A stretch of DNA of 64,000 nucleotides, from NCBI GenBank assembly GCA_047495785.1, contig JBLDXI010000054.1:4154001-4218000 (forward strand), in the 5' to 3' direction. Shown here piece by piece: positions 31,216 through 64,000 of the stretch. Origin of the DNA: Lepidodermella squamata (Eukaryota; Animalia; Gastrotricha). Below the pieces are notes generated by a model. It had not been told where the DNA came from and made no database searches. It saw only the letters and a list, made by a program, of their open reading frames with translations. A program made the translations under genes and the position numbers. The stretch's first letter is position 1, and the number at the start of each line of letters is the position of its first letter.

Positions 31216-34200
31216 TTAACACCGTTTAGTTTTGCCTGAAGAATGCTTGCGATCCTTCGGAGGCCGTCTCGCGTCGCCTGGTGTCGCGAGTGTCGACGGC
31301 ATACCGCCCGAGTAGGGAGGGGGCACGGGTGGCGGCACGTGACCTGCCGGGGTCGCCGGTGGGGAAGATGCAGGGGTGGACGCATGAACAGGTAGCAGTA
31401 GGACGAGTTGCGACGCCGTAGACGAGAAAAGACCCGATGCGCGACGGTACTCTTGATGCGCTGCCGATTCGGTGGGCAATGATGTCGATGAGACCCACGA
31501 ATCTTCGACTACTTTGGCCGGTTGGTTGTACGCCGCGCTCACCGGCTGACCTTCACCGCTGTTACCGGTGCCGGTACTCATAGAGGTACCGGCCGAGGAT
31601 GATAAGGACCCTGAGGCGACGCACGACAGGCCCGTCATGCCGCCAACTGCCACAGGCAACGAAACCTTGCCCTTGACGGCGATTGGAGCAGCGGCGTGTT
31701 GCCAGTGTTGTTGCGGCATCGGCGCCGGCGCCATCGAGTGGACACGAACTGGTTTGGGCCGAGCAGAAGGCTCGTCAGTCACAACCCCGACCATAGGTGG
31801 GGGCGGAAGCACAACATTGCTGCTGTGGCGACGTTTGGCGAACGACGACGCGCTAGATGGCTTGCGCGAACCGCCGGCGCCTGCCATTTTAGCTTTGGCC
31901 GCCAAGTCAGGTCGCGTGCCGATAGGCCCAAACAAGGCAAGAAAGACAGGCAGCACGATCATAGCGTGAAGCGAGGATAGGACGATGCAAATGAACAAGG
32001 TCTTGAAAAAAGTGCGGAAGATGTACGCCTCCGTCGTAGCCATGGCCATGATCGACAGCGTAGTAGCGCAGCCGGCCTGTACGACCGTGAGGCCCAAGTC
32101 GCAAATGGCTTCGACGGTCTTCTCGCGTCGCGACTCGTGCTCGGAGATGACGTAGGCGTGCATGAGATGGGTGGCGTAGTCGACGCAGTAACCGACGCAG
32201 ATGATGATGCATACCATGGAAATTGAGTCGAGATCAACCGACCAGAACGACATGAGGCCGAAAATGCCGACGATAATCGAAAGAATGGTCATGAACAGCC
32301 AGAAAATGCACACCGGATGCACGATCATGAACATAGATGCAATAATGACGGAGGCGATGGCGATGAGGATGTTGTAGATGGTGAGTGGCAGCACAGTGAT
32401 GTACTGGTCGTAGAAGACGAACTCTTGGTTGTAGGCGAAGACGCCGAGTTGTGGGTACGAGTCGGCGACTTCACGCGCCCTTGTCATAATGAGGCGCTCG
32501 CGGTTCGAGTCGATGACGTCGCGAGACACAACGACGCCGCGAGACGCCAGGATTCGCGTTCCCGTCTCGTCGAATCGAATGTCATCCTCGTACTTTTTGT
32601 ATTTAGAATGGCGCAGAAACTTGCAGCGTAGGATGTTTACAAAATAGGTTAGATCGAGGCGTTCGCTCGTCGGCGACAGCACGTCCGTCACGTTGCGCAG
32701 GTACGCCACGTAGTCGCGCAGCCAGAATTCGGTGATATGCTCGCCCCAAAATAGATCATTGCTTGAAGATTCAAGTTTCGTAAACATTTCGAGCGCATCC
32801 CTTTGTACGATTGGATCGGAGTAGTCTAGCTGCTGGTTGTGCAGGAACACGAGAGAGACAGACTGGCCGTAGTGGCGAAAGTAACGCCTCAACGCGTGGA
32901 AATATCGAACCGATACAGAGTTGTCTGGCGCCAGGTGCTCCATGCGCAAACCTTCGTGTATCTGCGACGCGCCATACAATGACAGCCCTATGTAGACGAC
33001 GAAGGCAACTAAAACGCAAATCCTGCCGGGCACGGACAACAAAGCCGGTGCATAGACATGTTTGAAAAAATAATACGCCTTGCTGTTGCCATGGTCTTCG
33101 TCACGCATTTCGAACTCGACTTCTTCTTCCTTGGTTTTGACTGGTTCAGGCGCAATGCTCTCTTCAACGCCGCCAGATACAGGTTGCTTCTCCGAGACAA
33201 GAGCGTCGCGGCTGGGCGATGCCGGCGGGGTGTAGCCGCCCGAGCACATGATCATGTAGCACGTTGAGCGGTCGTTGGCGAACGCTGATGAGCGAGGTTC
33301 AGCGCGCGTGCAACACAGCAGCGAGTGGCGATTCGCAGCTTCGGCGTGGCCGAACAGCGCGAGACACCCGGCGAAGAAGCTCATTTGCAGGAAAAAGTCG
33401 AAGAACATGGCAGCTGTCGTAACTTTTGAAAAGATCTGGATTCCTATTGAGAAAAAAACATAAATTCGAACATTATATTCATATTCCGGCTAATTTTAGA
33501 AAACCAAGATTAACTTTTGAAAACAGTGCAAGCCTTTAGATCAATAGGGGGTTCCTGAACAGATGAAAACTTCTATACAGCTAGCTACATTCTGGGGACA
33601 TTAACCCACAATTTTCTGAAAAAATCCAAGCAGTTTAGGGCTTCAAAATTTAAATACAAAGCTAGAACATCAATTTTCGAGACTTTCAAAGGCGAAGAAT
33701 TATAACGATGTGTTTTACCTGGATATGGCATGTAACTGCCGATGATGAAAGACAGGACGTTGACGAAGGAGGTGATGGTGATCGACGTGCCAGCGTCCTC
33801 CATCGTCAGCTTCATGCGCTTCTCGACGGAGAGGCGCGGGTTCGTGCGGTTCCAAGCGCCCATCAGCACAAACATGTCGTCGATGCCGATGCCAAGCGTC
33901 AGGAACGGCGTAACAGTAGATAGAGTGATGAACGGCACACCGATCCAGCCGGAGAAGCCGAAAGCTGCAGCAGTCGCCAAGCCAGTTGATAGAATGCCGA
34001 GCATTCCGAGCCAAGGCTTCGAACGTACCATGTCGTTAGAGATGCACAGCACCATGGAGAACAGAATCAACGCGGCGAGAGCGAGGCCGAATTTCGGCAG
34101 CAGGCGCATTGTAATATTTTTAATCTCGGTCTCAACTACGCTAGCCGAGTAGGGAAACACTTCGAAGTACGGGTCGTTCAAATTCGTCAGTAGCCGTGAA

Positions 34201-39993: not shown

Positions 39994-40443
39994 TCACAGA
40001 CGACGACCACGGCGACCGCCCTTCCGCCGGGTGGAGTCGGAGGGAACCGGGGTCACGTCCTCGATACGACCGATCTTCATGCCAGCACGAGCCAGGGCAC
40101 GCAGGGCTGACTGGGCGCCAGGGCCGGGGGTCTTCGAGCGGGTACCGCCGGTGGCGCGCAGCTTGATGTGCAGGGCAGTGACGCCGAGGCCCTTGCAGCG
40201 CTCAGCAACGTCTTGCGCGGCAAGCATAGCGGCGTAGGGCGAGGCTTCGTCGCGATCCGCCTTGACCTTCATGCCACCGGTGATGCGGCAGATGGTTTCC
40301 TTGCCGGACAAGTCGGTGATGTGAACGAAGGTGTCGTTGTACGACGCGAAGATGTGCGCGACGCCAAAGACCAAGTTGTTGTCGGTGAGAGGGGCGGCCA
40401 AGGTGACCTGCTGTTCGACCTTAGGGGCACGACGCGGGGCCAT
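39994..40443 (-). CDS. RPS14: 40S ribosomal protein S14 (uS11), coding region intronless
   Basis: [26 protein letters not shown]...[16 protein letters not shown]...[14 protein letters not shown]. Strong G/C-ending codon bias. Confidence 0.99.
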
Positions 40444-40573
40444 TTTGTTGTCAAGTTAGCAGTATAACTTTAACAAAACTATCAAATGAAAAGAAACTGC
40501 TTAAAAAAGAACGTTCAATGAGCAGGTAGAAAAAACGATCGCAGAGATAGTAGAATAAAAGAGAAAGCGCTGT

Positions 40574-45510: not shown

Positions 45511-48500
45511 TTAAAGACGATTGCTATGCCATTGCCACTGTCGAAGTTGACGGTCAAAAGAGTGCGACAACCATTGTCGCTCAAGAATGGCCATTCTATC
45601 GATAGAGGCACGAAGCGGTCTACCTCGCTTCAAATCGCGGTCTTCCTCTCCGTGAGCGTCCAAATAAGGTGATCCCCAGATAGTGTATCGAGGCCCTGAT
45701 TTAGAATGAAATTGTCAAGATTATCCAGTCATGACTCATCAAGCTGAAAATTACCCCGGATGACAAAAACGCATGACGTTGGAACAACCAAGAAAAGTCC
45801 TGTGCCAGCTCCGCATTTTCGGGAGTGATAGACGGCCTCGAAAACGCCGTCTCGGTTGCAACAAACTTCACGAAAGCAGCTGAAATCGAACTTTATGCAA
45901 ACGATAACTCAGAGAAAATATGTCAAACATACACAATTTGACCACAGACCAAACAAACCCCAGCCCTGGTTGGAACACGGTGACATTGACCACAGCGCCA
46001 AGGTCGGACCGCGTGAAACAATTGATCAAATAAATTTGGCACTCGGAGCAGTCGCGGTTGAAACCAGGACTGGTGCATTGGATTGATCACAGTTTTCAAC
46101 AAGCCTTGATTCACTGGCGAAGCGGAAACCTCGTCGAACCACATTTTCAGAGCAGCAGGGCAAGAGGTTAAGATGGCTGAAGCATCCTCCTCAACCGACT
46201 GCCCCTTTGAAGATACATTTGCCGATGAGTTGACTGACATGGACCCTTCTTCATCGATCGCAAACCTGTTGAAACATTCAAATGCGTTTTTGAATACTAT
46301 ATATCAATCAAGCGCTTACCAAACGTAATCCCATGGATCAATTTCTCCGGAAGCTCCAATCGCTGCGTTAACGACGCCAGCGTCCAATCCAAGGCAATTG
46401 ACGAGAAAAGTGAATCGCTCAGCCACCCCACACGGTTTACGCTTTCCGCCAGCACTGTCAAACAAACAAGTCTGCTGGCGCTGATGTCTCTGATTCAAGC
46501 AGCACGTCAAAGTCGCAGCTAATTCGAGGAAAGGCAAACAAGAACACCGGACAGCATCGGCAAGAGCCTGCGGTGACCACACGGTGGAAGAAATTCCACT
46601 GGATACGGGTGATGAGTCGTTCGATTGCAGCAATTTGGTCTGCTCCCCCAGTATGAGTATTTGAGCAATTATCGAATTGGCACTTTTTGCTTTCTTCCAC
46701 GATGACCGCTCGGAATCTGACAATTGCCGGGCGGTTTTTATCACAGCTTGGACAACTAAAATGGTTCGAAAGCAAGTTATAGCATTAAAACTGAAATCGA
46801 GACATAGTAGCTTACTTTTCAAATTAAAAAGCGATTGGATAATGGCAGAAACATAGGCTGATGAAAGCTCGAACGGCAGGCCGGATAGGACAAAAAGCAA
46901 CAGTAAGACTGAAGGATCGTAGCCGAGGAGGGGAATTGTCGTTTTTGAGCTAAACAAAGCTGGATCGGCTAGTCCTACCAGACGAAGGAAGATTTTGCGG
47001 TAAAGCAGTCTCAGTTCGGCTGATAAAATCGTAAAACAACACGCAGCAACGCATGAGAGTAATGGGTAGAGCGCCTGACATGAACAGCATTGCTCGTTCG
47101 AGCCCTGTCGTAGTCGGCAGAATTCGAAGTTTGCTTGGATCACGTGAATAAGCAGTGAAGTCAGGCCCAAAGCACCACTCGATCTGAGCAGAGTTGAAGC
47201 TGCGTTATCATGAGACAACGAGGTCTGCTGCATGATCAACGAAATGTCGGTTTCGAATTGTCGAAGTGCAAGGAAGATATGTGCCCGGTGGGAGAAAACG
47301 CGACGGCGAGCTAAAACTTTGTCTGTGTGCTTGGGGTCGAAATATAGAGCTATACTACGAAGACGTTCCGCTGAGTCGAAAGCTGGCGGGTCGGGAAGCA
47401 ACTGCGACTCGTCATCGCGAGCGAAAAGAGCGTTCGGCACCAACGGAACCGCACAATTCGCCAACTGCCGGCACAACGGACATGCGTATTCACCGAGCTC
47501 TCTCGCTGCCAGGGTCACCTCGTTGCCAAGGCCACCGATAGCTTCGTCAAGAGCCGGCAACATTTCATTGTCTCCAGCAGCTAGACCGCCCATGTCAAAG
47601 TCTTCTAAGAAATTACCACCGATGCCAGGAATAGCGAAAAGCTGCTCGAGAACATTGTTCAATGACTCGTTGCCGCCGCGGTTCACCCGAAGGTAGTTAT
47701 GATGACAATCAAAGTGAGCAGCGCTGAAAACAAACCAGAATATTAGCATAAAATATAAGGAAATAAATTAAATTCTAATATAGTCTTTCTAACCCCTTCC
47801 CATCATAACAAAGTTAAGGCGCAAATAAGTCATGAAGAAGCAAGTTTATCTATGATTTATTGACATTTAAAAAAAATAAACTCACTGTTGAGCACTTCCA
47901 CTGCCACACAGGGTAAGGTGAACATCGACGGGCCAAAATGCTGAAGAGGCGCAAAGCGACGACGGCGACGTAGCGACGGCGTTCCGCTGATGCGAAGGCG
48001 ACGGTTCGTTCTCATCTTCGACCTGGCTAGCCCTGGCGAAATCGCGGAACGCGTTCATTATCACTTGTCTTGCGTGCCCAGCTGAATGATCGAATGAAGG
48101 AATCGCCTCAAGATGCGAAGAAGCAGCGGCGCTACCGCTAACTGGCGGGGGTAAATCAAACGGTCCCTCAGTATCATAACGATGATGCAGGATAGTCGAC
48201 GATTGGCACATTGATATCACAACAAAGGGTCGCTCGACAGTCGAAGGGCCAGACAAGTTGCAAATACAGCAGTCGTAAACCTGCGACTGTCGCACCGGTT
48301 GCAGCGGCGACAAACTCGACGTGCCAATCGCTTCCATTAACGAAGATTGGTCGACAGAGACAGATAAGCTATTCAAAATCAGGTATAAGATTGCGCCTAG
48401 AATTTAGCATAATTAGTTCAACTTACGCAGATAGATTTGAAGATTGGTCGCTTCCGATCTCTACTTCACCTTCAACAACCATTTGTTCGAGAAACTGGCG

Positions 48501-51500
48501 CTGCTGCTTAGCCATGAGAGCCAGAATCTTTTCGCGACGTTTAGCAGCAGCCTTCGCCGCATCAGCACCGCCTGAACCGCCAGCCTCCGAGTCTGCGCTA
48601 GGTTTGCTCGATCTGCCACTAGAATTCGCGCTAATCGCATTGATCATCTGTTTTAACGTTTCATTGCATGCGGAAATTTTGTCCAGGAGTTGTGAAATTG
48701 CTCCGTGAGCATCGAAAATTCGAGGCCCCACATTGGTACAACTAGCCGGGAGAGCGCGCGAGCTGAAGTGGTCTCGAATGTGACAAAGCAGCGAAAGCAT
48801 CGAATGCCCGATAGCTAATTTGTCGCTAGATGACGCCTCACGCCATGAGGCTGGCAGCGAGAACATGAGTTGCAGAGATGCACGGTCCAAGCCACCACCA
48901 GGCCATTGCGCATCTTGCTCGACATTGCCCGGAGGAAGTTCAGCCAACCGTTTTCTCCTCAGATCCTGTTGAAATTGCTCATTAGGCGGCTGTACAGAGG
49001 CGATCACTTGGCACAAATTGGAGAAAATGTTGTCCGACTGATACCATCCATTCAAAAAATCGCAGTCAGAGACGGCTACAGGTTCGTTTTGTGAGACATG
49101 AGTATTATCCTTGACTAATGCGTCAATGCCCAGTTCGATTAAATTAACAGCAACTGCGATTACTTGGTCCGGAAGGGTAACGCTCGAAGGTCCCGCTGTT
49201 AGCTCATTCCAGTAGCGAAATAGCAAAGCAAATAGAGCAGCGTGTAGGAAGCGCGAGGTTCCGCAGAGTTTTGCAGCGAGATCGCCGACGTTGGACGAAC
49301 TGGCGAAAGCACAGAACGGTGCCCACAATTGCTTGGCACACGTTGACGATCCAATCGAAGAAATCCGAGAGACGACAGACACAAAACGGTCCATGCAGTT
49401 TTGAAAGTCTTTACGCTGGTAGGAGCGAAGGAGGACATGCGCAGGATCGAAATCGCGCCCGTTGGTCCAGATAGTGTCGCGAAGAACGTACGTTCCTGAC
49501 ATAACTTGACCTGTGACGTCAGTTGAAGGCTCCTTGAAATCGGCAACGTCAGAGATGCAGGCATCCACATCGTCGGCTGTGGTGCCTGTGTTGTCGATGC
49601 TAGACGCCATTTCAACAGAAGCAATGTGTCGCTGCGGAATTGAGTCGATGAGCTCAGAATAAGTTCGATCTGCTAGGCATAACTGAGTGACAATTTCTCG
49701 CCGCAATTGACTACGGTAGAAGGCGCGTGCTTCTGGTGCCATTATGTTCATGGAAGGTAGCAAATGAAGACGGGCAATTTGAAGGATCAATAGGAGCGCC
49801 GACTCGAGTAAAACCATCTCGTTGTAGCGCTGCTCCCCGAAATAAGCAGATTTGACCTGAGATGGTTCCTAAAATTAGAAAAACACAGGAAAAGACATCA
49901 TAACGTCAACAAATGAAGACTTTCAAGAAGAGTTTATTTTTAGTTGAAAAAGTTGACATTTCACGCAAGAATTAATTTAATATGTGGTCACAATAAAATG
50001 GACATCAGCAGTATATTATTTTATATTTTCTAATGACTAACCTGCTCCATTCTGTTCGCATGGGTCGGCTTGAAAATGGAGAAAGTGTCCAGAACGTGAA
50101 ATTGCTCTAGAACGAAGGCTACAAGTCGATTCGCAGAAAGCCCAGCAGACAAGGCTGCCTGAATCAGCGACAAATCTAGGTCAATGAACGAAGAGGCGAA
50201 ATTTGTCTGGGCATAGGCTAGGGCCTTCGTTCTCAAGATGGTTCCATTGCGTAGCCAAATGTTACAGCCTATTTCCGACCTTGCCGCTTGCAGCTGAATC
50301 AATGGACGAACGAGTTGACTGAGAAACTGTTCATCGTCTGGTAGTAACGATGCTATGGCTTTAGGGTCGTACGTCGCATGAACAGCGTGTACAAGGGCTG
50401 ATATAGCCCGATGAAGGGGCAAGTGGAATGAAAACTCGAAAGCACACAGCATTGCCGAAGGTTCAGAACCATGAGCCCGATGATGCTCCAGCTCAGCGAC
50501 AAGGCTCTTGACAATTTCAGACGCGTATTGCAGTTTTTCGGCATATTCCCAGGGTGCTTGCTCAGTTTGAGCCGCCAGTAACCACAGAGGGGCGGAGCAC
50601 GCTTCCAGTTCAAGAGAATACGCAGTGGAGAATGCAGTCTCCGAATCCAGCTCAATGTGATTTTTGAAGTACTTTTGATTTGCATTCATTCCGTGGCACA
50701 GAGACATAGTATGAGCCCACCTTAATAATTATAAATACTTCAATGAAAAATCAAGTCACTCGCCAGAATCTTACTTCTTTATCAAAGACGAGTCGGTTAG
50801 AAGCTTTGAAGCAATCGATCTATGGACAATCAAGTTGTACAAATCTGAAACTAGTGGCCAGTAAGCAATCGCTTGGCCCAGGACTCGATTTTCCGTATCA
50901 ACCACCGGGAGCAAAGCATTGTTGCGACGCTTAGTCGAACAGTACCGTAACAGAGCGATAAGCGAGGATAGCTGAGATGATAAACCCGAGCATTCAAAAA
51001 CAGCTAGTTGGGCTAAATCTGCATTCGAGTACAGCTGGACAGTGACGTGAAGAAAGCGCTGCGCTAGGCCGCGTTTCGACTCGCGATCGAGATCACTCTC
51101 ACTTCGGACTTTCAAGTTCAAGCACAGCAATGCAGCAACTATTGGGTATTGAACAGCCAATCGCCTCGTCATTTCGCTAATAATTAAAATCAACAGAACT
51201 GCTGATAAGAAAAGTTAATTATGAGTAAAGTTACCTAGCGTAATGTCTGACAGGAAGCAGTGAAAGGAGAAAATTGAGCAATCGAGTAGGTAATCTAGTC
51301 GCAAGTAACCATCGGAATAGCTCGTCTAACAAATTGTTACATTGATCTTTATGTGAGTAATATTGTGCCGATAGTGAAGCTGCAATGAAAATAAACATCA
51401 TCAGCAATAGCCTAACTTAGATTTGGATAAAATTACGCGAAAACAAGGTAATGGTGCGGCGAAGACTGGCAAGTAGTTCGTCCCGAGCCCATAAAGAGGA

Positions 51501-52458
51501 CCCGATGGACGTAGGATTGCCTTCCACCTCATTCGCTTTAGCGTATGCCGTCTCGTCTAACAGCGCATTCACCAGTTCCTCCTTGGCAGAATAGCCAGCA
51601 TTGGCGATAGATTCAAGCCAGTCACACATCTAAAACAATCGAATTGAAAAAGAATATTCCAATAGTCAATGATACATTACCTTTCCTAAATCATTCTCTG
51701 CCGTTAAAATGCTCATCGGCATGATAAATTCTTCAGGTTGTTCGGCATCCATGATGCGTCCACGAGTAACCAATCGCTGCTTGTAATTTTCATGATAGCA
51801 GTGTCGGAAGAAAACGGTAAGTCGAAACAATTTTCGAAATAAAATATAAGGCGCAGTTGCAACAAGCTCAGGAGGCGGCTTCACAGTCGAAGAGCGGCCG
51901 TGGAAAGTGCAAAATCCCGAAGGCGACATGACCGACGAGTTGCCGCAATCACACGTCCCACCGCTTGACGAGCGGAACATATTCGAATCATGACCCTCGT
52001 GGTTTCCGGCCCGAAAACAGTCGGCGCACAGTGACATGTTAGGATTACGAGAACAAGTTTTGCACCGGTAACCGATGTAACTAGTTGACCACACTAAGCC
52101 ACACACCGGGGAGACGTTGAATGGGCGCAGAGCTCGCGCCCAGTCCTCTAGTTTGCCGCCTCCTGACAACAAGCATTCCAGCTTCTCGAGGTTCGGACTT
52201 GGCGTTAAAGCATTAGAAAAATGTTCCAAGTTGTGAGGAGGCAATGGCATCAAAACATCCACCATAGATTCAAACTGACTAATTTTGTCAGCTTCCCCGT
52301 TGGCTACGCCTGAGTTAGAACGGTTTTATTCATTCAAATTATAAAAACAAGTCGAGTGAATTACCTTGCCGTAGTGGGCCGCATACTAATTTTCTTTCCC
52401 TACTGCTTGAAGGAAGAACAGCTGATGGCGATGGAGGTGAACTTGATTTGTAAGACAT
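45511..52458 (-). CDS. UBR3: E3 ubiquitin ligase UBR3 (UBR box, RING, UBR C-terminal domain), many exons
   Basis: UBR box CGLVWS...YRCKTC...MSLCADCF...HEGHD...CDCG. RING CCIC...CG..H..H..C...CPLCRQLAN. C-terminus WGSPYLDAHGEEDRDLKRGRPL...WQWHSNRL*. Confidence 0.93.
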
Positions 52459-52778
52459 TGCTGTTTACGTTATACCCGTAAACTTCCTAAATTAAGTATC
52501 AGAGATTGAATCACGGCAATAAACTAGCTTTTCGTGGTTTCTTCAAAAAAAATCAGCAATATCAAGCGCAAATGAAAGCGGTTAATCACGAGCCTCGCAT
52601 CCGGGATATGAAAAAATTACCCAACGAAAATGTACATGCAGTTTCGCAATCACAGAACTAAACAGTCACAACAGCGGATTCAACTTTTTAGAATCGAAAA
52701 AAATTATGCTTTCATAAGCTGGCTATCGAATTAATCACAAGTAAATATGTAGTTCAAGAATGTATAGTCAATTGCGTT

Positions 52779-55700
52779 TCAATTTAAAGCCATGTTTGGC
52801 GGATCAGAACCGAATCGCTGGCGGTAGAGAGTTGAATACAGGGCACCTGCTTTTGTGGGATCGATGTAGGCCTCGCAAACGTAACACCACAACGAGAGAT
52901 CTGAAAGCCCAAGTGCCATAGCATGCCTGCTCCCAGTTTGAGCGAAATGCTCCAGTGCATGACCCGAACGGTGGCGACCGCAGCCGACTTGAAAGCAGGC
53001 CAGACAAATCCATCCCTCGAATTTGTCTCCACAGGAATCACAAGCGTTTTCGCCTAAACATAAAATACATTTAGCTCATAAATTATCATTCAGCGATGAC
53101 ATCTAAGGCCCCAGTCAAAAATGTTCACCATCATCTTCAATCATCCAATTAAGTCAAAATAAGTTAGATAAGATTGCATTTTTAGTTACCTGACAAGCCG
53201 GTGGGTAAATCTGATGCTTTTCGGCAGCATATAGCATACGATTCGTGTTTGCATCCGGGTAACACTTCCACAAGAAATCCAGTTTCGTCATTCAATCCGG
53301 AAGCAGATTGTGAGCCTATTCCAGGGGGCGTGGACAATCCAAGAGCTGAAGCAGTATTTGGAGCGACCGAGGTCGGGGTTACTTCAATCGTCACACGATT
53401 AAATGCCGCAGCTAAGGCATCTTCGTCTAGCATGGGTTTACTCTCAGCAGCTGGAAAATTAGGGGTCTGCATGGGCGGCGGCGGTGGCTGCACCGCTGGT
53501 GAAACTGACGAGTCGGGATTCGCTGGTGACGGGGTTTGACGAATATTTCTGTAACCTTTCTTGGTAGTCGTCGAGCTCGCTTTCTCGCTGGCACTCGCGG
53601 CCGCATCTCCGTCCGTAGGGATGCTGACTCTGAAAGGTGCGAGACAACGCCAGTACTCGCTTTGAGTTTCCAAAACAAGTGAAATAGTCTCAACAGCAGT
53701 CGACAAGGGTTTCTCAAGTCCAGTCGCTGCAAAAGCTGGAGTCATACCGAGTAGGGCGAGGCAGCAAGCTTCCGAAGCATCAGAAATGCTCTTCAAATTG
53801 TAGCCACCTTCCAAAGCAATCACGCACCGTCCTCCTGCAAGCGATGACAAATACAAAGTCATCGCTGCATACGCTTCTGGTGTCACATTGTACCCGCCCA
53901 ACGGATCACCAACAGCGGCATCGAATCCCGCTGAGATGAAGACAAGTTGTGGGCTATACTCATAGGCGATAGGCATGATTATTCTCTCAAATGCTGCCAA
54001 GTATTCACTGGCACCCATCTTGCCTCCTGACCACGGAATGTTGACATTGTGACCAACTCCTTTCCAGTTACCAACCACATCGTAGTCGCCTTCTTTTTTA
54101 CCCGGGTAAAAGCGACCATTTTCGAATCGGTGGAGGGATATGTACAGGAAGTGAGGATCATCAATGAAAATCGCCGATGTTCCGTCGCCAAAATGCACAT
54201 CCCAGTCAACAATCAAAATTCGATCCAGCTTGTATTTCTCCTTCGCAACCTTGGCCGCCACTGCAACATTGTTAAAAAGACAAAACCCGGCGGCACAGAA
54301 CGAGTCTGAATGATGGCCCGGAGGGCGAATCGCCGCGAATGCAGAGGCAGAGTTACCCGTCATCACGGAGTCAACAGCATCAATCAACCCTCCGGCGGCG
54401 TGCAGAGCCGAAGTAAGCGATTCGGGGCATGCATACAGCGAGTTTTGATCGCTAGCCCATTCGCTAACCTGAGAAGTGGACAACTTAGGCAGGCTGAACA
54501 CTTGATCGACGTGCCCGGGCGTGTGGACTGAAATAAGCTCATCTCGAGTCGCCGGACGGGACTGAATTACTTGAACTGTTCCGTCGTTTTTCAGCTCATC
54601 GCTCAAGATTTTCGTATCCCTCAGTCGCTGAACGATAGAAATTACTCGCTCAGGACATTCTGGGTGGCCGAACTCATGATCTGGCGGCTGATAACAAATT
54701 AGATGAAAATTTTAGCTTAAAAATAAGAACTTTTTAATTAAAATTACCTTATGCAGGTGCATAGCGTCTCCTTGGCTTATAACTAAGCAGAGACGCGCAA
54801 ATTTGGCCAACGGTCTTGGCACAAACAGAACAGCGTTGATTCTCCGTTCCATTTCAGCCGTAACTTCAGGAGCTTGATACCCGGAGTTCTGATCAACGGT
54901 CCACAGATCGAAGGTGGGTCGGTATTCGTCGATATATCTGGCTTTCGTGCGGCGCTTGCTAGCTGTCGCGAGCCAACTTTTCCACGGCTGCTCATCCGAC
55001 GAAGTTTTACCGTGGTACGCGAACACAGAGGGCCAATAAGGCCGAAGCTTCCGAATTAGGAGCAGTAGGGTTCTCACGAGGACAGGATCGCATGGGCTGA
55101 CAGCGCCCGATGGCAGCAAAGGCGCCGGCTCGCCGAGTAGGTCCCGCAGAGTTAAAGCGGCTCCCTCTGCTAGGGATTTCAAATTGTAGCCACCCTCGAG
55201 GAGGACACATACTTTTCCATCAGCAAACTGTCTGGCCATGTGCGTCAAATGGGCGTAGCCGGCAGGCGAAATGAGCATCTCACCTTCAGGACAACCAATC
55301 GCAGCATCGTACCCAGCCGAGATTATCACCAATTCAGGGTTGTATTCTCGAGCGATCGGGCTGATGATTTGTTGAAAAATGGCAATGTATTCCGAGTCTC
55401 CCATGCCAGTTTTGTTCAATGGAATGTTAATATTGAATCCTCTACCCTTGCCAGCTCCAATGTAATCCAAGTCACTCTCCCGCAGATAAGGCCAGAATGC
55501 AGCATATTCAAATCGGTGGACGGAAATGTACAAAACTTCTCTGCTGTTGTAGAAGATCCGCTGCGTACCTTGACCATGCTGTTAATGTATAGATAGGCAT
55601 GAACTACGAATCAGTTTAAAGGGGCCTCGAACTTACATGAACATCCCAATCAATAATAAGAATGCTGAAATAAATAATTCGATTGATTTTGATACATCAG

Positions 55701-56490
55701 AGTGAGACGGGGACATACCGACGAAGGCCCCTCTGGATAGCTCGCTTTGCTGCTAGAGCTGCGTTGTTAAAAAAGCAATAGCCATTTGCCTTATCACATG
55801 ATGCATGATGACCCGGCGGCCTGATTATAGCCATCCCATTGTTTATCTGCCTGAGGCGAACACGGAACGTTAAATAATGTACCTTAGGAAAAATGCGCGC
55901 ATTTACCCCGTCAGGATAGCTTCAACAAGGTTGAGAGTGCAGCCTGCTGATAGCAAGGCGCAGGAGTAAGCAGCATTGTCAAAATGAGTCCCATGTTTCT
56001 CGGAGAGTTTGATAAGCTCAGCATCATCAGCTTTTTCCGACCGATGCATGTCTGCGAGAAGACCTTCAGTGTGAATTGTAGCAATCTCCTCATCCGTTGC
56101 ATATCGAGGCTTCATTACTCAAATTGCATTTTCTTTTCAAAAAATTCTCTGCTAAAAATACCGGAATTTTCACGCATTTGTCCACTAAACCCAGCTCGCG
56201 AGCTCGATCATAGCAAACGGAAATCCTCTCCGGTCGCTCGGCTGCAATTAAATGCATGAAGGTCAAACTGACATGAAAAAACATTTCTGACATACCGTGA
56301 TCGGGCATCCATTTGTGTCTCGTTACAAGCATTCTTTCGGATAAAGGAATGTTACACTAGAAATTTCAACCGTAAAATACTACCTTTCATCGTAAACCAA
56401 ACCGGTTCGAAGTCTAGGCGGTTCAACGGCCGAAGTTGAAGTCCGCTTAACCGGTGTGTTCGAATTTGAGCGCAGTTGTCGGCGCTCCAT
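52779..56490 (-). CDS. HDAC6: Histone deacetylase 6 (two class IIb deacetylase domains plus ZnF-UBP)
   Basis: Two sets of RPPGHH/DWDVH/SAGxD/LEGGY motifs. The last exon encodes CDSC...[22 protein letters not shown]...[13 protein letters not shown] (ZnF-UBP). Confidence 0.96.
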
Positions 56491-57604
56491 GCTATCTGTA
56501 ATTTGAAGTCTAAACAAAATTCAAAAGACAGATTTAATTTGAAATTAGTTTTCATTCTGTCGCCGATCGCCACCAGGCTACACTCTCAAAACCCCGCATA
56601 AGCTTCAGTCAGATATCAGAACCAGTGATTAATGATGATTAGTGGAAGTAGTAGTGAAATAAAGTTCTACGTTCACCGAAACAAAACAAGTTTCACCACT
56701 TGAAAAACAAATAACGATCGCACCCGGCAATATTACGCATTCCCAACAATTTTGAACTATCATTCAAATAGAACCCACACTCGGAAGAAAAATTCTAGCA
56801 TTTGCATATTATTTCACACGGTCAGAAAGGCGAGGCGACATGATACCAGACGGAAGATGCAATAAAACAAAGGACAGTAGGTCAAATATCGTTCAATGAA
56901 AGGATCTTATCAGCAGGAAGTATTGCTATGAAACACTAAAGGTGGGGATCAGTAAAATTTAACAACAGCTTTTTAGCAGTAAATAGATGGCAAAACAATT
57001 ATCAAAAGACAAATGTGGCAGAAAATGAACTAAACGTATTTCATTGCGCAAAAAGGCGAAAGATTTTTATTGCTGCTGCTATATTATAATATCGTCGTAG
57101 CGTTTTTTGTGGTATTCGAAACCTTCGCACAAATAGAAAGCATTAACAAAATAAATAAGATTCATAATTTGCCAATAAACAATGCATAATCGCGCGAAGT
57201 TAATTGCATAATCTACATTTGCATACGTCAGTTAGCTAGCAACGCGGCAAACTGAGGAAACAGCATTTTTTGTACATGAAGCAAGACTCGGCTGAAAACT
57301 CTCTAGGAATGATGATAACTGCCAAGTATGTATGATACACACGGATTAACAACACTAACCGTTCGGTGCAAGCGCAAGATGATAAAATAACATTTGCTGC
57401 ATAATGAAGCTTGTATTCACAGTTAGTTCAAGCGGCCATAATACTTCAATCCGCAATACAGAAAATATAAGATGACCAGTAATATTCAATATTCAACTCG
57501 AAGAATAGCAGCAACAGAAAACGTATGGAAGAACTTTAATAAGACTGAATATGAGCCAAAGGACGGAAGCGGAGCAGGTAAAACTAATGGCAAAATAGTT
57601 TCTC

Positions 57605-60600
57605 TTATGAACACAAACACTTAGTACGATCCTTCTTTCGTTTGCTCGATGTGCTTTCGCCTCGAACAAGGTTGGCAACACTACCGGCAACCCGCTGATG
57701 GAAAACTTCAGCTGGGTGGCTATCAGCCGGCAAGCGCGAAGATGAACTTTCATCAGCAGCTGAGGCCGTGGTTTCGGCAGTCGAATTCGAAGGCTTCCTG
57801 AGCCGCAGTGAAAACTTTCCAATATGAAATTTACCACGCCTTTTACCAGGCGTCGGCGAGGTAACCGTCGAAAAGCTTTCAGCAGCGCTGTCCGGGTCAA
57901 CAGGTATTTCAAGGGTCTTTTTCATAGTTTTAGGGCTCAACAGAGGCGTTTCTTCGGTAGATGGGATTCGCAGCGTCAACGTTGGAGCTTCGCGAATAGT
58001 AATAACTGGTTGGTTTGTATCTTGCGACATCAGCAGTGGTTGGGTGTGATTGGCGTACTTATCCGAAAAAGCATTCTCGTCCGTTTCAAACTCTTCAAAG
58101 CCGACAAGGCCAGAATCCTGATCGCCAGCAGATGATGTAGCCCCGCTTTTATCACTCCTCGCTACCATTGGACTGGAGGCCCCGGAGCTGAAATATAGAG
58201 ATAAAATTAGCAAAATATTATTTCCCAAAATTTGATTCCTACCTGTGAGCTGCATCGCCCTTGCCCACTGGTGGGCTCAAAGATTTAGTACGCGATTCGT
58301 TAAGTGGAGTTTCAGGGGCTAATTGACTACTCATATTTGTTTTCGGCAATTTGAGGCTAGCACCGACCGAAGAATCAGCGCTGTTCGTGGAAAAACCAGG
58401 TAAAGGACTCGTAACCCTGGCTGGCTCTGGCTTTGAGTTGCCCGAATTCAAGGAAGGAGCAACAACCGGGGAGACGAAATCATCCTCTTCTTTCGCCAAA
58501 CAGATAGATGGGTCAATCGGGCTCGTTAAAGGCTGGCGAGTCGGTGGTGGCGGTGATCGCTGTCGTTTCCTCTGATAAGACAGCTGTTTACGCCGAAGAG
58601 TATTCGAGTCGAGCGATGGCAACGATCCTGTTTGATTCGTGCTCGATAGTACTGACAAATGATCCGTGTAATCGTAGCAATCGCCAACAATGCTGTCTTT
58701 AGTGCCTCTATCCAACTCGTCGCCATCCAATGCATCACTGCCAGCACAGTCTATGTCGCTATCAGCTTGATAATTACTGTTCGGAATATGAGCTTTGTGA
58801 CCCAAAAGGGTTGATTGAAGAAGACCAGTTCGATGTACAATCGGCAAAGTTCGGGTGGAAAGCGCCGCGATACCGTGCTGCACAAACTTTTGACTTGGTG
58901 GTGGCGACCAAAATGGTGAAGTTGACGAATTACTCTGCGACATAACTTCTGTAGAGGTTGACACTTTGCGTGCTCGGCTGTTGTCCATGAAACGAACTTC
59001 CAGTTTTTTCGATTTTCCGCGGCGGAAGCATCCATCGTTGACTATCACCCCATCGCCGATGAAAGTGGGCAGTGCTACTTTGTTCTGCATGAAATTAAGG
59101 GCCTTTGTAGCAACTTGCAGATTGCTGTTTGTCATATGAGCTCGCATCTTCGCCGAAAGATACTCGAACATTTCAGTGAGAGATTCGAATTCGGATGATG
59201 GATATGTAACAGGTGGACAGCTGAGTGCAGTATTGTCCTTGTTTTTCTTCCAGCTCGCCAACATTTCAGACAGAGACATGTGCTGATTCTCGCTAGCACT
59301 ACGGAAACTAGAAGGGAGAATAGGTAGAAAATTAGCAAAATAATTAAAAGAAACTATACCTCTTGAAGGCAATGCACATTGGCAAGCCACGAAGTTGTTC
59401 GATTAAGCGGGAGTAAAGATTTCGAGAAATTGAAACGCAGAAGAACCACAAGACGAGGGATACATTGGGTAGAGCATTCGAGGAGAATTCTGCTCTGTTC
59501 AGGCGCGATGAAACGCATATGCCGTCGTCTTTAGACAGCTCTACGCAAATTGACACTTCAAATGGCTCTTCACCGTTGCGATCAACTGAAAATCTGAGCA
59601 GCATTTTGCCATTGCTCATGTCGTGATCAACCAACATCAGGTCAGCCTTGTTACGGTGTGCCATGTAATATGATGGCAGAGCAGCGAGAATTCGCTGAAA
59701 CGACGATTCTAATATTGAGATTAGCTGGAAAAAATCAAATTTAAAAAATCAGAAAACTAAGTTTTTTCGCACAACGCACCTCTCCTGGGAATCCGAAATT
59801 GATAGTAAGCTGGCAATCATCAACGGCAAGCTCGGGCAGCCAATGAATAGGCCTTGTTAGGTGACAAAGGTGCGAGTAGAAATGCGGAAGTGTGTATACT
59901 CTTCGAATGAATGCACATCGATGAGCACCCAAAGGTAAAGGAGGCAAGACTTTGTCCCATGACGCGGGTGGCAAGGCGGAAGAGACGGGACAAAAGACAC
60001 CAAGCAGTCGCGACAAAGTTTCAAGCATTTCCAACTGGTCAGTGTCAGTGATTTTCCACAATGAGGGTAACATTCGCCCTAAGACCTGACCTCGCTCCAC
60101 CAAATTGACAATATTTTCGTCTAAGATGCCGTTGATAATATCAGGCAGTAAAGCATTTGCAGAATGAGAACAATTGGTGAGCTCGAGAAAGCGGGATGGG
60201 TCGATACAAATGAACGACTCCAATAACGAGGAAACAGATGACGTTAGGTAGCGGAAGTCGTAAATGACTCCGGCGTTGTGGAAGAAAGATGTCTCTCGTT
60301 CAACATCACTAGTCGGAATTCCAGCACGTTCGGCGTAATAAGCGAATTCTGCCCATGGCAATACAACAATCGAACGAAGACGTAATTGACGAATGTCTTC
60401 GTAAAGCTGCACCAAAGCTGGAGTCAATCGATGTGACAGTTGCGGGAAAAATGCCGAATTTTCAGAGCACCGTTTTAGGATGCTTTGTCTCAGCTCTGAT
60501 ATGCCTTGTCGTGAGCGGCAGGAAACAGGATGGACCAAATTTGATGTAGCTGGCGTCGTGTCAGATAAACGATTGAGAAAAATTACTTGACGTTGACAAA

Positions 60601-61951
60601 TCGGCGGCGATTTTCCGTCTTCAAAAAGTTTAGCAGATTCTTCAATGATTTCATCGGATAACTTTTTGGCTATGGAAGTTCTCAAATTCAACAGCTGGTT
60701 CAGCTTCTCTTCACAATACGCCATATTAGCGGTCAAGGAATCCGCGTTGAGAGCATCGGCATGTGTTCCGACGATTATTATGTTTGCTGATGGCACGCGA
60801 GCCCAAACAGAAAGAACATTACGAATCACCGAATCAACCCCTCCGCTGTCGGCAAGATCAAAGGCTACGATGTAAATTCCTTGTTCGATGAAAAAAATAT
60901 CTCCAAGAGCTGTGAAATCATCAGGTAGCTCCCATATTTCGAAAAGATATTTACCAGACATAGAGCCATTAGCTGACATCAACGCTGACGGATCCCATAA
61001 AGAAACGCCGCTAAAACCAGAGTTAGTTTGAGGGATGAGCAGCGGGTTATCAAAAGTCAAGCATTTTATGAGCGCTGACTTCCCAACCCCAGGCTCTCCA
61101 ATAACGAAGACTTTAATTCGATAAGTGAGTTGATAGTCGAGAAAATATGTCAGCAGTTGTTGAAATCCTTTGGGAGTGTACGCCTGGTGAACCATTTCTG
61201 AATCAGCAGCAACGGGATGAGTCAACTGCTTACATCCCAGTAGTTTCAGCTGCTTCAACTGCTGAAGGCAAACCACAGCGGATGGTAGCCTCTTTATGCC
61301 AGTGGCTTCCATGCTTATAGTTTGAAGGTTGGAGCAGCCTTTGGCTAGTGCAACCAGGGCAGTTTCTGTAATACCTGGACATTTATCGACACATATTTCT
61401 CTCAGCTCTTGATTTCGTGAAGCGACGGCTTCAACGCCAAGATCTGTGATTAACGTGCATTCACCAAAATCAGCTGACAGCAACGAGGAGCAATGTTTTG
61501 CCAGATCAGACAAGCCATGATCGCCAATCCTAGTCGATCGTAAAGAAATCGACCGCAGATTTCGACATGACTCCGCCACATTTGACAGTGAAGCGTCAGA
61601 AAAGGCCAGGCAATTGCTCAAGGTCAGGTTGGTTAACATCTGAAAATTCGAAATAAACCCGTCAATTACGGGCACTGACACGTGGTTTAATCGATTCAAG
61701 TTCAGCTTCGTGAGAGAGCCAGAGCCGCACATCCGCTGGAGTGCAAATATGTCATCGTCACCGACAACGTCTCGATCACCACTGCTACCATCAACTGTGA
61801 CGGCTTGTAAATTTACTAGTTTCCCAGCCACTGCATCGGCGAGTTTAGGGTCGATACTGCCTTCATGAACCACCAACTGCTTTACCAAATTTCCTCGTTT
61901 GATCAAGAAATCATTTACGCCTGCACTGCCTTTTTTAATCTCAAGGGACAT
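57605..61951 (-). CDS. ROCO-family protein: F-box-protein-type (Cys-containing) LRRs + Roc + COR, disordered C-terminus, no kinase; exons ~61951-59780, ~59724-59359, ~59307-58243, ~58187-57605
   Basis: LRRs such as LxxLxLSNCLAFSDASL and CTLITDLGV. P-loop KVFVIGEPGVGKSAL, IIVGTHAD, VSCRSRQGISELR. COR-like FFHNAGVIYDF...ICIDPSRF. Confidence 0.82.
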
Positions 61952-62750
61952 CTAAAGAGGTTCAAGAATATATTTACTTTCCTCTATCCTTTTCTTTTGC
62001 GATGTGTTGACACTTTCTATCCAGAGTTCTATCCAGAGTATCTATATTCTATATTCAAGATATATTCGTCTAATTGATAAGATGAAAGCTGGGGCAGAGT
62101 AAGCAATAAGCATTGAGGATCTAGGACTCGTTAATCGTCAACTGGCATAGTATCTCGCAGATCACAGAGCCTTTTCGTGTGGGTTCGAAATGAATTAGCA
62201 TTCAGCATTGAGGACAAGGGGCGTCAAGCGACGTCAAATGGAGTCAAGGAGGTAGGAGAGTTCAGAGCCAAAACTCAGCGCAAGGAGCAAGGAAGGAGAC
62301 ACTTTTCGCGGCATCATCAGTCAGCACCGGCAACAACTGACCGCACTAACTGAAAGAAAAACAGTAAGATTTTTAATAGCATCGGTGTATTTATGTCTAT
62401 TTCAATTCAATGAGTTTTTTGTCAAAATTATGGTAGTCAATATGTGTCAATACTTTATGAAAAAAATTGAAAATCCGGCGCATCTGATACGTTGTTTTGG
62501 GTATGATGATCGCGCTTAATCAAGATTGAATCATCTTGTTATTTCATGTCATCAGTCAGCTCTAATGCTCGTTAAAAGGGCTCGCTAATAATGTATTAGA
62601 AGCAGTAGACAGCGCTTTAATGGCAAAGCTAGCCAGTTTTAGGATTGCAACTGTTATATATTACTTACTTGCAAAGTACCTGTTTGCACTTTTTTCATTT
62701 TCAGTGTTTTAATTATGTTAGTGTTCAAACTGTTGTGATTTAGAAGGTTC

Positions 62751-64000
62751 ATGCTTTTTAAACGTTCCATTGGCTCAATTAGATTTGTTTTCACTCGTTT
62801 TTACTCTCGAAAAAGAATGTCAGACGCTGCAGTAGAATCGAGCCAACATGATGCAGCCGCTGGAGACAAGCCCAAGTCTCAGCCAAAAGTCTTCGAGGAA
62901 GTTTTTCCCTCGTATATTGAGCATCGTGAAAAGTTGTGGCAGAAACACAAAGCTGATTGTACGGCTCATCTGAGTAGGAAGGATAAGTCCTCGATCAAAG
63001 TAACCTACGAGTCAAAGGATGGGGAGAAAACGTTTGACGGTCTTTCATGGCAGACGACCCCCGCTGAAGTCCTAAAAAATCTTGACAAGAAGTTGTCTAA
63101 GGAGGCGATTATTGCTCGGGTTAACGGTGAATTGTGGGATCTTGAACGCCCTCTTGAAGGCGATTGCAAGTTAAAGGGATTGCGTTTCGAGGACGATGAA
63201 GAGGCTCAAGCTGTGTTTTGGCATTCCACTGCCCACGTTTTAGGAGAAGCGATGGAGCGCTATTACGGTGGCTTACTTTGCTACGGTCCACCAATTGAAA
63301 ATGGATTTTACTACGATATGTTTATGGATAATGGCAAGAGTGCAAGTGCCGACGATTTTGAACCTCTCGAAAAAATCATGACCAAAATTGTCACTGAGCG
63401 GCAACCATTTGAACGCCTCGAAATGACTCGCGATCAACTGCTGGAAATGTTTGATTACAACAAATTCAAATGTCGCATTATCCGGGAAAAGGTAATATTT
63501 ACCGCTTTTTTCGTAACGCAATAATAATTGATTGTTTACCTTTGCTCAGATCGATACCCCGACAACCACTGCATATAAATGTGGCACCTTGATTGATCTG
63601 TGCCGTGGACCTCATGTACCTAACACCGCTCTGTTGCGTGCTTTCAAGGTCACGAAGAACTCGTCTAGTTATTGGGAAGGCGATTGCAATGCCGAATCGT
63701 TGCAACGTGTCTACGGAATTTCTTTTCCCGAAAAGGATAAACTGAAGGAATGGGTGAAACTTCAAGAAGAAGCAGCCAAGCGAGATCATCGTCGTATTGG
63801 CCGAGAGCAGGAATTGTTCTTCTTCCACGAGCTCTCCCCTGGCAGTTGTTTCTTTATGCCCAAAGGTAATTATTGTCAAACTAAATTCTAGTCACCTTCA
63901 AGCGATTACCAAACGACTTAGGTGCCATTATCTACAACCGTTTGATGGAGTGGATTCGCGAAGAATACAAAAAGCGTGGCTACAGTGAAGTTATCTCGCC
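62751..64000 (+). CDS. TARS1: Threonyl-tRNA synthetase (5' part; runs off the window)
   Basis: TGS domain [81 protein letters not shown]. Confidence 0.98.

Follow-up and report, generated by a model that had tools for sequence, protein, structure and literature searches.

A probable trans-spliced leader joined between two in-frame start codons of a threonyl-tRNA synthetase gene in Lepidodermella squamata, with a possible role in mitochondrial versus cytosolic targeting

The window analysed here, a 64,000-nucleotide stretch of the Lepidodermella squamata genome, ends within a gene for a eukaryotic cytoplasmic-type threonyl-tRNA synthetase (ThrRS). The gene had been named as ThrRS in a first-pass annotation of this DNA, an assignment borne out by Pfam matches to TGS (exon 1) and tRNA_SAD (exon 2) and by the closest database fragments, which are animal cytoplasmic-type ThrRS at 51–59% identity. 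The class II core of the enzyme lies beyond the window end, and the syntenic ortholog described below has both tRNA-synt_2b and HGTP_anticodon. Counted from the downstream of two in-frame start codons (ATG2), the part of the gene within the window is organized as follows:

62817–63491, plus strand: ThrRS exon 1 from ATG2 (A at −3), covering the TGS domain and the first part of the editing region.
63492–63549, plus strand: ThrRS intron 1, 58 nt, GT..AG, its joint present in a contig of run X1 (see below).
63550–63865, plus strand: ThrRS exon 2, with the tRNA_SAD domain.
63866–63921, plus strand: ThrRS intron 2, 56 nt, GT..AG, its joint likewise present in an X1 contig.
63922–64000, plus strand: start of ThrRS exon 3, the gene continuing past the window end.

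The upstream neighbour of ThrRS is a divergent gene on the other strand (59741–61951), and an Rfam scan of the window gave zero matches. For an HDAC6-like protein of the window the best matches were those of molluscs and fish, at about 50% identity, which points to an animal, probably a spiralian, that lacks close named relatives. A search of the protein collection with the ROCO-type neighbour gave a single clear relative, P0241, at 57% identity. It is encoded on L003 and L004, contigs of one related species from two ENA metagenome samples. Gene order is shared among these sequences, with ThrRS divergent from ROCO, followed by an HDAC-like (HDAC6-like) and a UBR1-like gene (window 46000–64000, L003 1–17797, L004 1–6855), and the ThrRS of the relative is 62% identical over the first 247 residues, above any other match. 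Both short introns are missing from the relative's gene (L003 3113–4513), in which the first 448 codons form one open frame; by this comparison the introns at 63492–63549 and 63866–63921 represent a recent gain or loss.

In front of ATG2 the reading frame extends back to an upstream start codon (ATG1):

62751–62816, plus strand: ATG1 and a 22-codon presequence-like extension, identified by composition statistics and by conservation in the relative.

ATG1 (62751–62753) is in frame with ATG2 (62817–62819, MSDAAVE...) without an intervening stop, and the 22 residues between them include seven basic and no acidic residues; this arrangement of two ATGs and a basic, acid-free extension had been described in the first-pass annotation, and every coordinate checks out. 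Of the 969 22-mers in the window that begin with ATG and contain no stop, 1.2% have at least seven basic residues and no acidic one; among 20,000 composition-preserving shuffles of the extension's own nucleotides, none does. The extension also contains RFYS, which, if cut after the tyrosine, presumably fits the R-2/R-3 processing (cleavage) motifs. By composition, then, the peptide encoded between the two in-frame AUGs resembles a targeting sequence, as in ThrRS genes of the tars-1 type (see below). The start context of ATG1 is weak (T at −3) and that of ATG2 strong (A at −3). Several other invertebrate ThrRS fragments have an N-terminal extension preceding an internal methionine, and one such gene is present in the database both with and without its N-terminal extension (P0001 and P0002).

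The relative has the same arrangement. Its 5′ end reads ...AAATTTAG ATTGTTT ATG... and encodes MLLKRSIRFVIACRFQSRFTK followed by MSSEVAA..., such that ATG1, the open frame and ATG2 are all kept, and its presequence likewise contains no acidic residues, with six basic ones. Thirteen of 19 aligned presequence residues are identical between the two species, and the three indels that separate them (9, 3 and 3 nt) all preserve the frame. At the DNA level the presequences are 85% identical over 60 aligned positions, with an alignment score that was reached by none of 2000 shuffles, whereas the approximately 25 residues after ATG2 are only about 20% identical, and the intergenic DNA further upstream aligns at noise level only. 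Since this block exceeds the adjoining coding sequence in conservation and keeps its frame through three indels, it is presumably being translated, and the two-species alignment shows the 22 codons from ATG1 to be under constraint at the protein level. Together with its composition, this supports the view that the N-terminal extension resembles a mitochondrial presequence and is evolutionarily conserved.

An alternative is that ATG1 never yields an imported protein, that the conserved block is an RNA signal made up of outron and 5′-UTR, and that mitochondrial ThrRS is supplied by another gene. Many eukaryotes do have a separate mitochondrial ThrRS gene (PMC10196762), and the main mRNA of the locus, described below, lacks ATG1. 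An RNA signal of this kind, however, would hardly be expected to change by three indels that are all multiples of three while retaining ATG1 and an open frame, to keep 13 of 19 residues where the next 25 are only about 20% identical, or to encode a presequence-like composition in both species; moreover, ThrRS genes with two starts are on record for C. elegans, Drosophila and Arabidopsis. We therefore regard an unused ATG1 as improbable.

RNA evidence bearing on the start codons came from two sequencing runs whose contigs were aligned to the window: X1, with RNA status recorded as a guess, and X2, represented by a DNA contig of another haplotype or strain. As X1 contigs lack both introns exactly (GT..AG, 58 and 56 nt), X1 is RNA. 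The 5′-most X1 contig (233 nt, depth approximately 235) fits 62781–62992 with zero mismatches and carries 21 non-genomic letters in front (CGTATCGATTTTCGAATTCTA). The genome at the junction reads ...CAATTAG/ATTTG, the slash marking the point of joining, and because an acceptor AG is removed in splicing, the AG of the contig must derive from the added piece, which thus ends in ...CTAAG. Most known spliced leaders have AG at their end (table in PMC3795323). The 21 letters have no match in the 64-kb window on either strand at up to three mismatches, the upstream neighbour is divergent, and the X2 DNA matches the window across the junction with no insertion; from these observations together we read the added piece as a trans-spliced leader. 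A short non-genomic leader is thus joined to this mRNA between the two ATGs, at the following site:

62780–62782, plus strand: internal TAG acceptor (AG at 62781–62782) within the codons ATT-AGA, with the X1 leader junction; the exon begins at 62783.

For this one gene, therefore, an AG acceptor is joined to a leader that the locus itself does not encode, and the acceptor of the short variant (62782/62783) lies between AUG1 (62751) and AUG2 (62817).

That the 21 letters are something other than a spliced leader, be it a strain-specific insertion, an artefact of assembly or library, or a cis exon that lies far away or is missing from the assembly, is in our judgement very improbable. They were seen in one contig of one run, whose RNA status is a recorded guess, they contain three restriction-site palindromes (ATCGAT, TTCGAA and GAATTC), and they match none of the published leaders that were searched. 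On the other hand, the junction falls exactly behind a genomic TAG, and the contig depth of about 235 indicates that it is both dominant and precise. A cis exon or an artefact would also have to be reconciled with the removal of both introns in X1 and with the absence of the leader from 62.7 kb of upstream DNA that contains other genes, including the divergent neighbour, and a strain-specific insertion with X2 DNA that has none at the junction.

Searches for the identity of the leader were made in several collections. The 21 letters match neither the chaetognath leaders nor the rotifer leader, nor any of 30 consensus leaders listed in a table, nor the leaders in the SLIDR paper. In the published literature, 13- to 15-mers of the leader had no match, and 11- and 12-mers matched cloning primers only, while JGI metagenome contigs gave two chance matches that lack donor context. 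Treated as an upstream cis exon, the leader had no match within the window at up to three mismatches, and an exact look-up of RPS14 for the leader on a second gene gave nothing on record.

The consequence of the junction for the protein is direct. With the leader joined at 62783, ATG1 is missing from the main mRNA, from which only the short, cytosolic form can be made; the 5′ UTR of this mRNA consists of the leader, which in its visible part has no ATG, and 34 nt of genomic sequence, and the first AUG is ATG2:

62783–62816, plus strand: 5′ UTR of the short leader-carrying mRNA, 34 nt, containing a pyrimidine tract and the AG at 62814–62815, over which the X1 contig is continuous.

The first-pass annotation had proposed that a splice acceptor is hidden inside the presequence-coding sequence, and in this respect it anticipated the junction at TAG 62780–62782 and the resulting mRNA with ATG2 only. 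It had, however, assigned the acceptor to the AG at 62814–62815, 1 nt before ATG2, and it lacked the AG at 62781–62782. The AGs that it listed (62703–62704, 62742–62743 and 62814–62815) are all present, and a tract of approximately 81% pyrimidine occupies 62784–62809, yet we reject the site at 62814–62815 because the RNA contig reads uninterrupted from 62783 through 62816, because the site is AAG (A at −3) whereas TAG or CAG is found at the used acceptor and at both confirmed intron ends, and because the relative has ACTAAAATG at the equivalent position, with no AG before ATG2. Only two AG dinucleotides occur within the 66 nt of the extension, and AGs alone are unremarkable. The context of the used acceptor, TCNATTAG/ATTTGTT, is identical in L003 and L004, a conservation that is inseparable from that of the Ile-Arg codons and could be accounted for by the codons alone.

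Two minor features of the leader junction may be mentioned. Read back from ATG2, its frame meets no stop in any of the 21 visible leader letters and includes AUC and AUU codons, and the distance from the internal acceptor to ATG2 is 34 nt in the window and 40 nt in the relative, the phase being equal in both. The open frame through the leader and the equal phase are probably by-products of coding constraint. The DNA run is also informative as to variation at the locus: over 1.8 kb (62191–64000), X2 differs from the window by 15 substitutions and four small insertions, none of which falls in 62640–62992 (promoter-proximal DNA, presequence and start of the coding sequence). Five of six coding differences are synonymous, and four substitutions lie in the 56-nt intron 2.

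An mRNA retaining ATG1 was not seen in X1, where no contig extends over 62751–62780, although a minor form may be lost among such contigs. Logan contigs clip short, low-coverage 5′ tips, and the data accordingly show the 62783 junction, the one junction class among X1 contigs, to be dominant rather than sole. Upstream of ATG1 the frame is closed by the TGA at 62736, and the sequence contains two candidate acceptors and a short upstream open reading frame (uORF):

62741–62743, plus strand: TAG 7 nt before ATG1 (AG at 62742–62743), candidate acceptor for a long (mitochondrial) mRNA.
62719–62721, plus strand: TAG 29 nt before ATG1, candidate acceptor by positional conservation only, with a TAG at the same distance in L003 (4491–4489).
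62715–62738, plus strand: seven-codon uORF (MLVFKLL) that shares the frame of ATG1 and ends at the TGA at 62736.

The arrangement of TTTAG, 7 nt and ATG is kept in L003 and L004, and as the position of this TTTAG is conserved amid intergenic DNA that is not, use of 62741–62743 as an acceptor is suggested. The same site matches a layout, TAG shortly before ATG, that is found at ROCO and RPS14 in the window. Leader addition at the more distal TAG (62719–62721) would also keep ATG1 and drop the ATG of the uORF, which would be confined to transcripts whose start or splice point lies upstream of 62715. Of the two upstream acceptors that had been suggested to retain ATG1, the one at 62742–62743 thus gains from the comparison with the relative, where its position 7 nt before ATG1 is kept, while the one at 62703–62704 (TTTTCAG, the best match to consensus) has no counterpart there and no RNA support, and is an unlikely acceptor. 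In L003 (4513–4460) the frame of the uORF has no stop between an ATG 18 codons upstream and that species' ATG1, and gene callers therefore lengthen the protein there.

We lean, with moderate confidence, towards a model in which a single ThrRS gene yields two proteins and the choice of acceptor sets the ratio of mitochondrial to cytosolic enzyme. The main mRNA, with its leader at TAG 62780–62782, would start at ATG2 and give the cytosolic enzyme, while a minority mRNA would retain ATG1, most likely because the same leader is joined instead at the conserved TAG 62741–62743 or at the TAG 29 nt upstream of ATG1. The long product would be imported into mitochondria and cleaved near RFYS, between RF and YS, so that acceptor choice would set the mitochondrial versus cytosolic ThrRS ratio. 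Given the weak context of ATG1, the long mRNA could, through leaky scanning, be an additional source of cytosolic protein.

Alternatively, the long mRNA may be an un-trans-spliced primary transcript, a capped fraction of which escapes leader addition at 62782 and keeps ATG1, in which case the switch would be the efficiency of trans-splicing or the use of promoters. In its favour, X1 contigs show a single junction class, a TATA-like element (TATATAT, 62655–62661) lies approximately 90 nt before ATG1, and dual targeting of aminoacyl-tRNA synthetases is known to arise from the use of different transcription start sites (PMC7600831). But an un-spliced transcript starting upstream of 62715 would include the ATG of the uORF, and the TTTAG 7 nt before ATG1 keeps its place in the relative amid intergenic DNA that is not conserved, which suggests that it is used. 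We consider escape from trans-splicing unlikely, though less so than an unused ATG1, and regard leader addition at an upstream acceptor as the preferred source of the long mRNA. RNA processing probably helps to decide between mitochondrial and cytosolic ThrRS.

Two well-studied systems resemble this locus in different respects. In C. elegans, the single gene tars-1 has two in-frame AUGs and a 41-residue N-terminus that is a proven targeting sequence, and 5′-RACE revealed a single mRNA with both AUGs, placing the choice at translation (PMC10196762). As in tars-1, the enzyme here is a cytoplasmic-type ThrRS of an animal with two in-frame AUGs, of which the downstream one is the stronger; in tars-1 the stretch between the AUGs is the mitochondrial targeting sequence and the downstream AUG gives the abundant cytosolic form. 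The extension in Lepidodermella is shorter (22 versus 41 residues), and, unlike in tars-1, leader addition separates the two AUGs of the dominant Lepidodermella mRNA, which would place at least part of the choice at RNA processing. The dominant RNA form thus does not hold both AUGs on one mRNA, although a minor form with both AUGs is possible. In Trypanosoma brucei, alternative trans-splicing of IleRS is proven, the long variant encoding a presequence and the short one the cytosolic enzyme (PMC3273800). There the leader is added at either of two acceptors, and the short variant lacks the presequence AUG, as does the short mRNA of Lepidodermella. T. brucei, however, is a protist in which every mRNA is trans-spliced, the synthetase is a different one, and both variants and their localisations are experimental, whereas the short variant alone has been seen for Lepidodermella ThrRS. 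The Lepidodermella locus resembles tars-1 in the layout of its protein and IleRS in that of its RNA.

Other dual-localised ThrRS genes share the principle of one gene that encodes a longer form with a targeting peptide and a shorter form. Arabidopsis ThrRS and ValRS have two in-frame AUGs (Souciet et al., 1999, as that work is cited in PMC7600831), and Drosophila ThrRS is listed as localised to both cytosol and mitochondria (PMC4826098). These differ from the present case in that Arabidopsis relies on alternative initiation on one mRNA and Drosophila on annotated alternative polypeptides, neither with trans-splicing.

In a limited literature search we found no animal example of alternative leader acceptors controlling the targeting of a synthetase, and no paper linking gastrotrichs with spliced leaders. 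It is plausible, at somewhat less than even odds, that this is the first case in an animal in which two conserved spliced-leader acceptors bracketing AUG1 set the fate of a synthetase, where the same 66 nt would serve as both import signal and trans-splice site, and in a phylum, possibly Gastrotricha, without published trans-splicing. The locus would illustrate how an animal that seemingly relies on one ThrRS gene can supply both of its translation systems, and it suggests that animals with leader trans-splicing may split the two forms at RNA processing, as trypanosomes do, in addition to the ribosomal choice known from C. elegans. A lesson for annotation is that the main protein here does not begin at the first ATG of its open frame, and that leader acceptors within an apparent coding sequence can conceal isoform switches. 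From the junction, both the 3′ end of a leader and an acceptor in use are now available for a genome in which trans-splicing is absent from the literature searched.

Candidate leader acceptors are present at other genes in the window. The start codon of ROCO is directly preceded by CTCTTTAG (61952–61960, minus strand). At RPS14, a single-exon gene (39994–40443), a TAG lies 35 nt before the ATG (40444–40490, minus strand), and the open reading frame starting at 33408 likewise has a TAG 35 nt before its ATG (33409–33450, minus strand).
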